Shown: positions 5,386-42,822, counted from the stretch's first letter. The stretch: 62,000 nucleotides of DNA from Octopus vulgaris (GCA_951406725.2 OX597826.1:60160001-60222000), one strand, 5' to 3'. The notes: generated from the letters alone by a model not told the origin. Numbers and translations: made by a program.

Positions 5386-5585
5386 TTCGTTAGCTACTGC
5401 ACGCATTTTTTTTCTCTCCTTCTTTCTGTGTTTTTCTCTCTCTGTGTATCTTTCTGTTGAAGAGCGTAGGCTCGAAACGTTAAAGACTTGTTTTATTTAT
5501 ATTTCCTGAGCGCCATACTAATACAATTGTTCGTTTGTTTTCCACCTGCCTTCGTCTTTTGTTTATTTTCATAAAGCTTCCCGTT
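5386..5585 (+). mobile_element. ~200-bp (TA)n-embedded element with minimal hammerhead-like motif (family H1)
   Basis: 5449-5486: TCTTT-CTGTTGA-A-GAGC(GTAG)GCTC-GAAA-CGTT-AAAGA. Near-identical to 39378-39542 and flanked by (TA)n on both sides. Confidence 0.75.
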
Positions 5586-6209
5586 ATATATATATATATA
5601 TATATATATATATATATATATATGTATGTATGTATAGATAGATAGATAGATAGATAGATAGATAGATAGATAGATAGATACACACACACGAATACTTACA
5701 TATATAAACATATACATATACGTAGACATGTATGTGTATTGTGTGTGTTTGCAAACACATGATATACGTGTGTGTATGTTTCACTATATAGCTATATATG
5801 TAAATACAAATATGTATGTACATATGTATGCATATATCTATATATACATGTGTCAACGTATGTGAATATGTGTGCGTATATTCTTGTGTATATTGGACCC
5901 ACACTCGATCGCCATACTAGGATATTACAAATGTTTCTTCCCTCGGGTAAAACCCAAAGTTACAAACCTGTCTCAATCCAAAATTCCTGAAGGAATTCTT
6001 CTAAATGACAGCTTGGATTTTAGAAACAAATGACTATTTTCTTTCATAAAGGAATTGTAATGCTGTGATCAAAATCTTGAACCCAACTGCCATCATTGAT
6101 TACGGGTCAATGTACCTTTTCTGGTCTTTTGTCTTTCGATTTCCACAACAGTAAGATTTTGACAAACAGCTAAGTGTATTTGTTAGATGTAAGTTAGATG
6201 TATATCAGA

Positions 6210-6578
6210 CTAGCAGTATCGCCCGGCGTTGCTCGGGTTTGTAAGGGAAATAACTATAAAGCATTTTTAGAGAGTTATAGCCAAAAAAATGGGAAAAAAA
6301 TTATGGTAAATTTTTTTTAGTTAAAAAGGTCGAGTTGCGTCCCCTAGACAGTCTGTGGTTTGTGTTTCTAATTCTCGACCCCATGTCGAATTTATCGATT
6401 TTTTTCAGAACTGGGGGAACTTTTCAAAATTTTCGCTGCGTTAGTTTTGAATTATGACATTGGGCTATGTGTGTGTCAAGTTTCATCAGAATCGGTTGAA
6501 AGCCGTGGTCAGGGTGAGGGTACAACCTAACAGACACACAGAAACACACAGACAAACTGCCGTTTATATATAGAGAGA
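6210..6578 (-). mobile_element. Complete non-autonomous Helitron (369 bp)
   Basis: On the minus strand it starts 5'-TC (6578-6577) after an A and ends CTAG-3' (6213-6210) before a T. Subterminal GC hairpin CCCGGCGTTGCTCGGG at 6222-6237. No TSD. Confidence 0.8.
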
Positions 6579-6917
6579 TAAGGGCACCAGCAAACAATCA
6601 GCCATACACACCCACACAATACACCATCCATACACTCACACACTCATACTCACATAACGCACTGGTGTGTTTACACATTTTTGTCTACAGCAGGAATCTT
6701 TCTCGTAACAACTGGTATCATGTTTATATTTAAATACATTACTGCTTAGCGCTTCTAATACGTACAGGAAAAAAACACAACAGCCATTTTCAACTATAAA
6801 AGGTACATATATATTATTTGTTTACGAAATCAGAAGAGGTAAATTGACAGGATTACTCCATGTAGTCAATTGCGTTGCAAATAATGGCAGTCCATTGACT
6901 CAAAGACGTATACGGCC

Positions 6918-7360
6918 CAGGCCTGGGTGTGCGGAAAGAAGCCTGATTCCCAAACACATGGCTCAGGGTTCAGTCCCACTGCGTGGCATCTTTGGCAAGT
7001 GTCTTCTACTATAGCCTCGGGCCGACCAGGGCCTTGTGAATAGATTTGGTAGACGGAAACAGAAAGAATCACGTCGTGTGTGTATATATATATATATATA
7101 TATATGCATGTATATATCCATATACATATATATATATATACATATATATGTGTGTGCTTGTGTTTGTGTTTGACCACCACCATTGCTTAACAAACGATGT
7201 TGGTGTGTTTACGTCCCCGTAATTTAGAGGTTCGGTAAAAGTGACCGGTAATATATGTAACAGACTTACAAAAAATAAGCCCAGTGATCGATTTGTTCGA
7301 CTAAGAGGAAGTGCTCCAGCATGGCCACAGTCAAAATGAGTGAAACAGGTGAAAAAACAA
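6918..7360 (+). mobile_element. tRNA/CORE-type SINE (family A), near full length, with internal (TA)n
   Basis: B-box-like GGTTCAGTCCC, then GGCAAGTGTCTTC and GGTAGACGGAAAC, with the family 3' half ending GTGAAACAGGTGAAAAAAC. Confidence 0.85.
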
Positions 7361-8009
7361 TATGTATGTATGTATGTATGTATGAATGTGTATCTATGTA
7401 TGCATGTATATGTGTGCGCATGTGTGTAGTTGTGTCTGTGTGTGTGTACGTGTGTGTGTGTGTGTGTGTGTGTGTGTGTTTGTGTGTAGACGGAGATTCT
7501 TATTAGAGAACTTTTGACTCCGATGTCTTTAGCCATAACTACATTACCAGTAAACGTAGGTGATTGCAAAAATTACGAACGCAAAGACAATTGACTGCAA
7601 TTTTCAAAACAGTTTCTTTCTTTTTTCTTTTCGAGACCTCAAGTTGTTTCGGCTTCATCGAAAATCGGCGTGTTGAGCGCTATCCTGCCCTATGTCATCT
7701 AGAGCGAGAAACCTGAAACGAGCGAATGAAGACAGGGATAGCGTGAATTAGATATGTGTATTGTCTGGTTTCCCTGTATTCTAAAATAATATTGTATATG
7801 ATGGTATATAATAGATAGTGTGCAAGCAGAGATGATATCATCAAAAGTATGTAAGTCAGATGAAAATGGCTATTGTGTTTGAAATGGAAATAGTAAAAGA
7901 TTGTTTCGTGATTTTGAAGACAACAACTTAATAAAACGGCCGCAAAAACGAACAAAACGAATATAAGTATTACTAATGAAGATAATAATAAATTCTACAA
8001 AAGGAGTAC

Positions 8010-39542: not shown

Positions 39543-40390
39543 AATATATATACATATATATATATATATATATATATACATATATACATATATACATATA
39601 TACATATATACATATATACATATATATACACACACACACACATATATATATATACATATATATGAGTGTGTGTGGGTGCGTGTGTATTGTGTATATCTAT
39701 ATGTGTAGGTGTACAAGTGAGTATATACCTTCATTAAGACAGAGAGAGGGGGAAAGAGAGAGCGAAAACTCAAGAACTACGGATCTACTTCCAAACTATC
39801 AAAATTCCATTGTGAAGAGAATGTCTCATGAGATACGTTAGAAAGGCCTCGTCAGGAGAATGGTTATACAGTTACAGAGAAAATAGTCGTTTTGGGTTGT
39901 TTTTTTTTTTAAATTGAAAATACCAAAGTCATATTAGCCTCGTGTTGACAAGAAAACGATTGGATTTTTGATAGAAACTCTAAGAATCTAAAGATTGACA
40001 TGCCATTGGGAATAACCGATATATAAGACTAACAGGCTTATATGTGTGTATTTAGCGCATAGACACATACATGCAGACATACAACCACACGCACATATGT
40101 ATGTATATATATATATATATATATATATATATATATATATATATATATATATATATATATATATATATATATATACATATATATATACATATACATATAT
40201 ATATATATATGTACATGTAATCAAATACACATATATTTATAGATATATATGTGTATGTACATATATAATATATATCTATCTCTCTTTCTATTTATCAATC
40301 AGTCAATCACTAAATCCATATATATATATATATATATATATATATATATATATATATATATATATGCATATATATATGTATATACATAAT

Positions 40391-41140
40391 CAAAACATTC
40401 AAACACTGAGATTTGAAATCAGATGTCAGTACTGTTCATATAACCTGTGGATTAATTTTAAAATTGATATCACCAGCCGTGACATAGGTGGATCGCAGGC
40501 GCAATAGCATTACATAGCTATGAATTATAACATTTGTACGAAGCGTAATGATGCTTAACAAGCATCCACCTGCTAGAAATGAGAGCTAAAGTCGTTAAAT
40601 TTATCCACTGTACCGCACCAAGATAATAGAGAAAAATCAGTATACGAGGAAAACAGAAAGAATTAAGACATTTAACAGCACAAAATAAAAATATTTTGGA
40701 ATTAGGGATATCCAGAAACCAGGATTCGGCTTTTGGTTATTTAAAGACTGAGCCTCATCAGGGTGGCCTACCGGGTAATAATCCATAACTCTTTAGTTAA
40801 ACTCTGACTGTGCAACTGGTTTTGATTTGTACCAAAACCAGAGCACATGGTGCATAAAAATTTATAAGCAAAACATTCAAACACTGAGATTTGAAATCAG
40901 ATGTCAGTACTGTTCATATAACCTGTGGATTAATTTTAAAATTGATATCACCAGCCGTGACATAGGTGGATCGCAGGCGCAATAGCATTACATAGCTATG
41001 AATTATAACATTTGTACGAAGCGTAATGATGCTTAACAAGCATCCACCTGCTAGAAATGAGAGCTAAAGTCGTTAAATTTATCCACTGTACCGCACCAAG
41101 ATAATAGAGAAAAATCAGTATACGAGGAAAACAGAAAGAA
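40391..41140. repeat. Identical 272-bp direct repeats with a 206-bp spacer (478-bp unit, about 1.6 copies), between (TA)n tracts
   Basis: 40391-40662 and 40869-41140 match base for base. Confidence 0.92.
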
Positions 41141-42344
41141 ATATATATATATATATATATATATATATATATATATATATATATATATATATATATATAT
41201 ATATATATGTGTGTGTGTGTGAGAGAGACTGTATACGTACATTCGTACGTATACGCATATGTACATTTTTATGTATTTGTGTGAGTGTATATGAATGTCT
41301 GTGCGCTTGTGTGAATGTTCAGTAAAAAATATATTATTCTTTAACTAGAATATTATTACATTATTAAGAATAACTTCGATGTTTCTCCTTGCGTAGGTCA
41401 ACATCAGACTGTGATAAATTTGAATACGTCTTGCCTTCACATTCTCACGTTTAAAATAAAATGTTCTAGTGCGGAGGAGATCTGGTGAGTGATAATTAAG
41501 TAGTAGGCTAAATTGTTACTGAGAAGTGTAATTGAATCCATTCGATGATATAATTTGGACCAAGGATGTTGATCTTCGTAATCATGCGTATCTGTGCGTG
41601 TCAGCTGACGCATTTAAACATTGAAACAGAACAGTGACGGTTTAACTGCCTGAAACATTGAAGTCACTGCATACACTGTTCTTCGGGAATTTTACATATA
41701 TAAATATATATATATATATATATATATATATATATATATATATAAGAGCATTAGGTTCCTTGGAAGAAAGCAACGTATGTTTGTTCTAGATTGAAGAAGG
41801 TAGGTGTGACACCATTGCTTTGAAAACACCCTACGAATCACCGCTTGTCACAATTCTATTCTGATAAACTTTTATTTGACAGAGATGGACATGAAAACCG
41901 TCTGAGGTAGAACTTCTGAATGAGTGGTTTGGAGACACTGAAACGATGGTGGGTGTGACATGGGTCCTCGACATCTTATCTTTGGTGGGTTTCCATGGGG
42001 ACTTCGCGAATTGGCTGGAGACCACTGAAATAAGAGTATCGTATCTAAAAGAAGACTATAATTTGTAGTTCTCAAAAATTAACATTTCTCATGAGAGTCT
42101 CAAAAGTTCGAGAAAACACTGCATATACCCAAACATGCATACACATAAGTGTATTTATGTATGCAGAGTTTATATGCACTGTTCACAATGAACCGTATCC
42201 GCTGTAAATGTCTGTTTCTTAAATGTCAAAATGTCAATCACATCCTGGAGAGTATGTATGTATATATACATTCCTGCGTATATATATATATATATATATA
42301 TATATATATATATATATATATATATATATATATATATATATATA

Positions 42345-42447
42345 TCAACAATCAGGAACGGCCATAATAGGCCATTCACCCACTATATCAACCGCAAATA
42401 TTTGCGGTTGAATATAGTGGGTATATTATGGCCGTTATGATTGTTGA
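42345..42447. repeat. ~100-bp palindrome with a perfect 22-bp zero-spacer centre
   Basis: TCAACAATCA..AACGGCCATAAT...ACCCACTATAT-CAACCGCAAAT|ATTTGCGGTTG-A-ATATAGTGGGT..ATTATGGCCGTT.TGATTGTTGA. Confidence 0.9.
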
Positions 42448-42639
42448 TGTTGAACTTAAAAATGGTCTATGACTATTTAATTTTTTCCTACTAGGCCGCT
42501 GGTGGCAAAGAATTCTACAAAATTTTTTTTTGCCACCCTATATTGATTATATATATATATATATATATATATATATATATATATATATATATATATATAT
42601 ATATATATATATATATATATATATATATATATATATATG

Positions 42640-42822
42640 ATAGATCGTTAGCTACTACACACATTCTTTTCTCTCCTTGTTTTTTTCTGTGTACCTTTCT
42701 GTAGAAGAGCGTAGGCTCGAAACGTAAAATACTTTTTCTATTCCTGAGCGCTATACTAATACATCTGTTAGTTTGTACACCACCTGCCTTCGTCTTGTGT
42801 TTATTTTCTTAAACTTACCTTT
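42640..42822 (+). mobile_element. Family H1 hammerhead-motif element in (TA)n, diverged subfamily
   Basis: 42696-42729: TTT-CTGTAGA-A-GAGC(GTAG)GCTC-GAAA-CGTA-AAA. CCTGAGCG at 42743-42750. Confidence 0.75.

Follow-up and report, generated by a model that had tools for sequence, protein, structure and literature searches.

Minimal hammerhead ribozymes were defined in the pseudo-long terminal repeats (pseudo-LTRs) of Penelope-like elements (PLEs; Cervera and de la Pena, 2014, PMC4209133). The majority of those in animal genomes occur singly and dispersed and were described as 'probably related to truncated PLEs', and some are oppositely oriented 100-700 bp apart; their cleavage in vitro is poor even as dimers (PMC4209133). 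The hammerhead is located near the 3' ends of PLEs, and some PLE clades insert preferentially into (TA)n (Craig et al., 2021, PMC8557442). In octopus genomes, Penelope families are abundant and have been active recently, and ~900 families of short interspersed nuclear elements (SINEs) are unclassified (PMC13282606, PMC8967140). The present analysis concerns a stretch of 62,000 nucleotides from Octopus vulgaris (GCA_951406725.2 OX597826.1:60160001-60222000; hereafter the window, with positions counted from its first letter), in which seven short, non-coding elements carry a motif that appears to be such a hammerhead. These H elements are probably (at a rough probability of 0.72) dispersed insertions of a single, ~200-bp, PLE-derived, non-autonomous retroelement family, corresponding to the hammerhead-bearing terminal module (pseudo-LTR/3' end) of PLEs.

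Two bodies of work bear on how such elements might spread. In vitro studies of the Poseidon PLE of Anolis have indicated that the enzyme cuts AT-rich DNA and uses unprocessed RNA, that reverse transcription has two adjacent start sites inside the RNA, ~85-92 nt beyond the cut of the hammerhead, and that catalytic mutants of the hammerhead leave insertion unimpaired (Frangieh et al., 2024, PMC11167929). Metazoan non-LTR retrozymes, on the other hand, are tandem repeats with canonical hammerheads stabilized by loop-loop contacts, from which the minimal PLE variants are set apart (Cervera and de la Pena, 2020, PMC7229834); according to a 2026 preprint, retrozymes originated from PLE pseudo-LTRs, with monomer fractions that range from 0 to 1 per family (Li et al., 2026, 10.64898/2026.07.22.740005).

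Copies of the family and their hammerhead motif

The window was found to contain exactly seven homologous non-coding copies, each 166-232 bp in length. All of the copies claimed in the original prediction, which was made from the sequence of the window, are present and match one another by BLASTN, and a search of the window for an eighth, using nhmmer with a profile of the seven-copy alignment, recovered only the same seven. They had been taken for two divergent families. The two groups are real (H1 with four copies, H2 with three), but they are subfamilies of one homologous family, alignable with each other end to end, with an identity of 70-89% in the motif and 41-67% in the rest of the element. 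On the strength of this alignment, H1 and H2 are regarded as of a single origin and not as separate inventions. The copies and their hammerheads are listed below, with the strand in brackets.

5387-5585 (+): H1 copy, full length, 199 bp, with (TA)n at both sides
5449-5486 (+): hammerhead of the 5387-5585 copy; stem I UCUUU/AAAGA (5 bp), core CUGUUGA (U6), extra A, stem II GAGC/GCUC, loop GUAG, GAAA, then ACGU; predicted cut after 5481
39379-39544 (+): H1 copy, 5'-truncated and without the last ~10 nt; hammerhead at 39418-39455
42639-42822 (+): H1 copy, ~80% identical to 5387-5585; hammerhead at 42696-42729, core CUGUAGA, stem I of 3 bp
31661-31848 (-): H1 copy, decayed; hammerhead at ~31751-31786, core CUGUCGA, with C11.1 changed to A and A13 to G
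13137-13350 (-): H2 copy; hammerhead at 13239-13273, core CCGACGA (C4), stem I GUUU/AAAC (4 bp); predicted cut after 13243(-)
14703-14934 (+): H2 copy, decayed; core CUGAAGA intact from 14790, ACGU palindrome lost (GAAAGGA)
31323-31519 (+): H2 copy, with (TA)n at both sides
31392-31424 (+): hammerhead of the 31323-31519 copy; stem I UUU/AAA, core CUGAAGA, extra A, stem II GAGC/GCUC, loop UUU, GAAA, then CG, U and U; predicted cut after 31421

Within H1, a single nucleotide in 166 separates copies 5387-5585 and 39379-39544, whose flanks are not related, and this points to recent mobility. The decayed copy at 31661-31848(-) has its 3' end facing the 31323-31519 copy over a (TA)n tract, and its 5' end adjoins another repeat.

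The order of the hammerhead, which had been proposed as common to all copies, was borne out in each of them: the 5' strand of stem I, C-Y-G-N-N-G-A, an extra A, GAGC-loop-GCUC, GAAA, CG, U, H and the 3' strand of stem I, the extra A falling between A9 and G10.1 in 7/7 copies. The pattern GAAGAGC-N3-5-GCTCGAAA has six matches in the window compared with none in 100 dinucleotide shuffles. A full descriptor comprising the core, the extra nucleotide, stem II with the G10.1-C11.1 pair, GAAA, the palindromic stem III, U-H and a stem I of at least 3 bp, with position 6 left free, detects five copies in the window and none in 40 shuffles. Across the seven copies, 22 of 38 columns are invariant in the hammerhead versus 21 of 157 elsewhere (Fisher p = 5e-8), and since inserted copies decay neutrally, the difference is attributed to constraint on the elements from which they were copied; judged from the aligned copies, constraint has clearly preserved the motif in the source lineages.

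The G10.1-C11.1 pair that closes stem II is found in six of the seven copies, and six likewise have the palindrome A-CG-U in place of stem III, which had indeed been predicted to consist of this palindrome only. The exceptions are the two copies that had been called partly decayed, and rightly so: the one at 14703-14934 (placed originally at 14725) reads GAAAGGA and has lost the palindrome, whereas that at 31661-31848 (originally 31670) reads GCTAGGAACGT, with the loss of C11.1, and hence of the closing pair, and of A13. A fully canonical core (CUGANGA...GAAA, with H17 not G) is present in a single copy of the seven, at 31395-31424, which speaks against a retrozyme; here the register of the cleavage predicted after 31421 is correct, and stem I consists of just three A-U pairs. 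Position 6 of the core is U in all four H1 copies (CUGU-N-GA), where position 7 varies (U, A, C), and the 13137-13350 copy has C at position 4. The features in common support, at the level of sequence, a Penelope-type minimal type-I hammerhead with palindromic ACGU for stem III.

Covariation of stem I, which had also been claimed, does not hold within the window, where three invariant A-U pairs and one compensatory change in one copy are not above shuffles; stem II is invariant in the window and so is uninformative in this respect. RNAalifold recovered stem II alone, both from the motif and from the 3' half of the elements, and the hammerhead fold was not among the minimum free energy folds of the copies as monomers or dimers. 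For four copies, the predicted energy of a Forster-type double-hammerhead dimer joined through ACGU is -1.9 to -14.9 kcal/mol versus -14.8 to -28.0 kcal/mol for the best dimer folds, and in each of the four the double hammerhead is the less stable, the canonical 31323-31519 copy having predicted values of -1.9 and -14.8 kcal/mol, respectively. In H1, the presence of U6 means that U4-G5-U6 is predicted to be able to pair with A15.1-C15.2-G16.2 to form a simple monomer hairpin. Being of the minimal PLE type, the hammerhead could cleave only as a dimer or with the help of protein.

Relatives elsewhere and the link with PLEs

A metagenome scan with the pattern GAAGAGC-N3-5-GCTCGAAACGT yielded at least 120 loci (L001-L120), the matches listed comprising 83 of low GC and 37 of high GC. 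In the low-GC matches listed, bases upstream of the pattern, which the search left unconstrained, are those of the hammerhead core (C3 in 68, Y4 in 78, G5 in 79, A6 in 78), and H17 is never G, so that in animal-type DNA the 18-nt string is almost always part of a whole hammerhead core. The five bases upstream are random in the 37 high-GC matches listed, which are therefore attributed to chance. The same core is shared by ~70 invertebrate-like metagenome contigs among the matches listed. C4, the same change as in the 13137-13350 copy, is found in 32 of the 83 low-GC matches listed, and U6 in none of them.

Stem I was assessed for covariation in a set of 14 family representatives that included the metagenome PLE motifs, for which one sequence per family and four window copies were taken. 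Across families, the first 3 bp of stem I covary with a score of 0.271, compared with 0.115 +/- 0.03 in shuffles (reached by 0/500), and a control with slid partners scored at most 0.14; pair 2.2-1.2, for example, occurs as GC (4), UA (4), CG (3), AU (1) and UG (1). Pairs 4 and 5 of stem I have no covariation support in this set, and stem II, being fixed by the metagenome search pattern, is uninformative.

The same core was detected next to genes of the PLE type. In locus L068 an open reading frame (ORF) with a match to RVT_1 (E = 5e-8) followed by a match to GIY-YIG (E = 3e-4), the latter just under the Pfam cut-off, is separated by 677 nt from the motif downstream of it, and this combination of a reverse transcriptase (RT) and an endonuclease domain is, by its domain matches, the architecture of a PLE. 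Comparison with sister copies (L058 and L102) places the end of this PLE copy in AT-rich DNA, 83 nt beyond the motif. A second locus (L008) has, 215 nt upstream of its motif, an ORF homologous to the endonuclease region of the first (BLASTP E = 4e-15), which Pfam did not recognize. Furthermore, in a large, coral-type family of PLE hammerheads, head-to-head inverted copies are centered just upstream of the motif (e.g. L035, L037, L050 and L098), an arrangement known from PLEs (PMC8557442).

Searches for further copies of the H elements themselves were negative. No H1 or H2 copy is among the metagenome matches listed, only other families with the same core; the H1 motif had no matches in viral contigs, and the H-specific pattern had none in bacterial or archaeal genomes. 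Translated ORFs across the elements gave no word-sharing candidates in the protein database, and the ORFs of the window, when looked up exactly in search of more copies, were not on record. The order of blocks downstream of the hammerhead, apparently shared by the H elements and metagenome PLE families, was considered as a further link and rejected as too weak for a claim of homology.

Element ends, proposed spread and alternative origins

In the copies, the core is preceded by 60-87 nt (44 nt in the truncated 39379-39544 copy), and the predicted cut is followed by 93-106 nt (~119 nt in the decayed 14703-14934 copy). Their 5' ends coincide, within a few nucleotides, in three of three H2 copies and two to three of the four H1 copies, which indicates a discrete unit as opposed to random truncation, and one copy in each subfamily lacks the last 8-13 nt (39379-39544 in H1 and 31323-31519 in H2). 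The predicted cleavage site is internal to every copy and the linear ends are fixed; because every copy spans the predicted cut, its template RNA was uncut when copied and not a permuted circle. Neither an ORF nor poly(A) was detected in the H elements, and terminal inverted repeats of 8 nt or more are absent from the four best-preserved copies. No tRNA-like gene was detected in the window by ARAGORN, and a search of the 62 kb for tandem arrays with the Tandem Repeats Finder (TRF) gave none whose period is 150-400 bp, the seven copies being solitary. The units include several runs of T4-T8 and are strongly strand-asymmetric (pyrimidine-rich). Downstream of the hammerhead, 24-33 nt past the cut, is a second conserved block, exact in five of the seven copies:

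5505-5512 (+): second conserved block, CCTGAGCG; also exact at 39474-39481, 42743-42750, 31443-31450 and 13212-13219(-)
14837-14844 and 31734-31742(-): degenerate versions of this block, in the two decayed copies

The GAGC of CCTGAGCG might pair with GCUC in competition with the 5' strand of stem II; a conserved structure was sought for the block in the 3' half and none was found.

As had been proposed, most copies are bounded by (TA)n: 11 of the 14 element ends directly abut such a tract, two do so partially and one does not, whereas only 10.3% of the positions in the window are at most 10 nt away from a (TA)>=4 tract.

A possible route of spread can be outlined from these features. A source copy would be transcribed, probably by read-through or by RNA polymerase II (pol II), the internal T-runs arguing against transcription by RNA polymerase III (pol III). 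The RT/GIY-YIG protein of a PLE located at another site in the genome would then bind the RNA in trans via the region from the hammerhead to the 3' end, and its putative endonuclease activity would nick AT-rich or (TA)n DNA, in keeping with the target bias that is observed. Reverse transcription would begin within the RNA ~95-105 nt past the hammerhead, a distance observed in the copies that matches PLE biochemistry, thereby fixing the 3' end of the new copy, and the copying of uncut linear RNA would generate a unit with a central hammerhead, as seen in all seven. Efficient self-cleavage is probably not needed for the spread of the H elements.

A number of points weigh against the derivation of the H elements from PLEs. 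An ORF with RT and GIY-YIG domains is found neither in nor near any copy, nor anywhere in the window, where the autonomous Penelope partner envisaged in the original prediction is absent, and no PLE sharing the terminal sequence of H1 or H2 was retrieved; mobilization in trans by a PLE is for these reasons something that we infer, and, without such an ORF, the elements are at most non-autonomous derivatives. Outside the hammerhead, the similarity of the H elements to metagenome PLE ends is only suggestive. No hammerhead was matched by Rfam at gathering thresholds over the whole window, nor by the Rfam hammerhead models at E <= 10 over 31300-31860, which leaves the motif without independent model-based confirmation; the absence of a match is expected, as the motif has no stem III. 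Target-site duplications are unreadable inside TA repeats, the (TA)n tracts might in part have grown out from the element ends instead of having pre-existed, and all statements on the family draw on a small sample, seven copies in one 62-kb window.

Among other explanations, the H elements could be ordinary, severely 5'-truncated copies of an autonomous PLE, of which incomplete reverse transcription left the last ~200 bp. The dispersed singles that make up most animal minimal hammerheads have been regarded in just this way (PMC4209133), the 93-106 nt from hammerhead to 3' end match the 3' end of PLEs (L068; PMC11167929), and the 39379-39544 copy is clearly 5'-truncated relative to the others. 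However, random truncation of a ~3-kb element would not give 5' ends that coincide in 3/3 H2 and 2-3/4 H1 copies despite 20-35% divergence, and there is no longer copy among the seven, so that this origin is unlikely. More improbable still is the possibility that they are metazoan non-LTR retrozymes, in which a tandem transcript would be cut twice, ligated into ~200-nt circles and recopied by a PLE enzyme, the monomers being dead-end offspring. The ~200-bp unit, low GC and type-I topology are within the retrozyme range, and the monomer fractions of 0 to 1 and the link to PLE pseudo-LTRs in the 2026 preprint (10.64898/2026.07.22.740005) would accommodate them, but there is no tandem or dimer in the 62 kb (nor any array of 150-400-bp period by TRF), the copies share the same linear ends around an internal cut site and so are not permuted, and only one of seven cores is canonical. 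Moreover, the H hammerhead is without the stem III and loop-loop contacts that define the retrozyme type (PMC7229834), its stem I is open, of 3-5 bp and without a loop 1, and even for the canonical copy the predicted double hammerhead (-1.9 kcal/mol) compares poorly with the best dimer fold (-14.8 kcal/mol). The original interpretation is supported in so far as it saw a Penelope-type minimal hammerhead in short, non-coding carriers inserted in TA repeats, and the occurrence of the same core downstream of an RT and GIY-YIG ORF in a related metagenome locus is in its favor; the part concerning retrozymes and circular RNAs is not supported.

The elements might also be SINEs or short retroposons moved by a microsatellite-targeting long interspersed nuclear element (LINE; e.g. 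Dong/R4), with the hammerhead-like block a relic or an internal promoter/B-box-like element. Active Dong-R4 LINEs are present in octopus genomes, together with unclassified SINE families that number in the hundreds (PMC13282606), and by inspection 8/11 positions of GGCTCGAAACG in H1 agree with a pol III B box; against this, there is no tRNA-like part (ARAGORN) and no A box, the internal T4-T8 runs would terminate pol III, and TA repeats flank both ends instead of forming a 3' tail alone. The block furthermore matches a full hammerhead core in order, the same core is found next to a PLE RT/endonuclease ORF elsewhere and stem I covaries across families, which renders a SINE origin very improbable. 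Least credible, to the point of being negligible, is a group of MITE-like DNA transposons (miniature inverted-repeat transposable elements, MITEs) with a TA target-site duplication that landed in TA repeats: the elements are small, non-coding and TA-flanked, but the four best-preserved copies have no terminal inverted repeat of 8 nt or more, the strand asymmetry is strong, and one 5'-truncated copy and variable 3' ends are typical of reverse transcription. The MITE, pol III SINE and tandem retrozyme readings were rejected in view of the missing terminal inverted repeats, tRNA-like part and tandem array, respectively.

If the H elements are terminal modules of PLEs, the retention of the hammerhead itself calls for comment. 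The H1 core has been kept except for the fixed U6, the subfamily has been mobile recently and its copies were made from uncut RNA, which leads to a reading of the hammerhead as a recognition or folding module. It may tentatively be suggested, although we consider it doubtful, that PLE-derived elements keep the hammerhead mainly as a recognition/folding element or protein-assisted switch and not as a self-cleaver, or that U6 is a natural variant that still cleaves with the help of protein; the predicted pairing of U6 with A15.1, locking a monomer hairpin, bears on the former. The fixed U6 in the recently mobile H1 is the one feature left without an explanation from the literature considered.

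The remainder of the window (33% GC) is dense in microsatellites and short interspersed repeats. Very long (TAA/TAT)n arrays of up to ~165 units (26309-27398 and 33290-33603) and many long, imperfect (TA)n arrays (e.g. 10994-11341 and 15779-16364) are present, as is a minisatellite at 2560-3775 with a period of 57/113 bp (~19 copies of the 57-bp unit, 84-91% matches) that is unrelated to the hammerhead elements. In some cases the 3' end of another SINE-like repeat passes directly into a (TA)n tract (13361-13372, and from 55325 onward), one such SINE-tail tract being immediately followed by the H2 copy at 13137-13350(-); hammerhead elements may thus often land in the microsatellite tails of other repeats. 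Two ORF fragments represent the C-terminal part of LINE-type proteins, at 26630-26905(-) and 25700-26031(-) (...IDVSIPADDNV...IPIIVGALG...), the former having 85% identity with a UniRef protein of Octopus bimaculoides and ~60% with those of other invertebrates. Contigs encoding relatives of this LINE tail contain no H element; one of them, a 20-kb long-read contig from another AT-rich animal (L122, ENA ERZ25067570), has a related LINE with an RVT_1 ORF, and neither TA tracts nor a hammerhead element. At least three other families of short interspersed repeats are recognized by shared spurious peptide signatures:

~6966-7208 (-), 30790-31026 (+), 45730-45978 (+), 53013-53189 (-) and 55804-56067 (+): interspersed repeat family
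21186-21422 (+), 49439-49645 (-) and 51310-51507 (-): interspersed repeat family
13373-13450 (-), 51784-51975 (+) and 56781-56948 (-): interspersed repeat family

Comparison with described systems

PLE-linked minimal hammerheads are already known in huge numbers in animal genomes, and the present finding mainly adds an octopus example, while offering a plausible identity for part of the unclassified short-repeat pool of octopus genomes. All four published hallmarks of the PLE minimal hammerhead (PMC4209133) are found in the window motif. As in these PLE motifs, the hammerhead of the H elements is type-I, with an ACGU palindrome for stem III, an extra unpaired nucleotide between A9 and G10.1 and the G10.1-C11.1 pair; it likewise has a short stem I, no loop-loop contacts and a low predicted stability of the active fold. 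The copies, too, are dispersed and single, and some are opposite in orientation a few hundred bp apart. The 4-bp stem II, by contrast, is shorter than that of the minimal hammerhead families of Schistosoma (6-8 bp), and the U6 found throughout H1 departs from the relatives among the metagenome matches listed. This non-canonical core in a mobile subfamily, together with the uncut templates, bears on what the PLE hammerhead is for.

Insertion in (TA)n is a property that the H elements have in common with the Neptune and Naiad clades of PLEs (PMC8557442). As in the Anolis PLE, the copies end ~80-110 nt past the hammerhead and have two alternative 3' ends, and by analogy the H elements fit each of the points established for that element, namely the AT-rich target, the internal start, the uncut RNA and the independence from cleavage. 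A discrete unit with its 3' end at the distance from the hammerhead at which PLE reverse transcription starts in vitro constitutes natural evidence for the internal-initiation model. Unlike PLEs, which are ~3 kb in length and coding, the H elements are ~200 bp, encode nothing and are without a tandem or inverted pseudo-LTR arrangement, and their optional 3' extension is 8-13 nt in comparison with the 30-40-nt 'tail' of PLEs.

Retrozymes resemble the H elements in being small, AT-rich, non-coding and hammerhead-bearing, with a presumed dependence on a PLE enzyme, and monomeric retrozyme derivatives are known. They differ in being tandem, with efficient canonical hammerheads and circular RNAs, whereas the H copies are solitary and not permuted and have a minimal, mostly non-canonical hammerhead. 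The SINE-like Sm-alpha and Sj-alpha elements of schistosomes are similarly short, interspersed and non-autonomous, with a type-I hammerhead; however, the pol III A and B boxes of Sm-alpha, and its active, canonical hammerhead in which tertiary contacts are made, have no counterpart in the H elements. The H elements belong to a known class, and do not represent a new kind of system.

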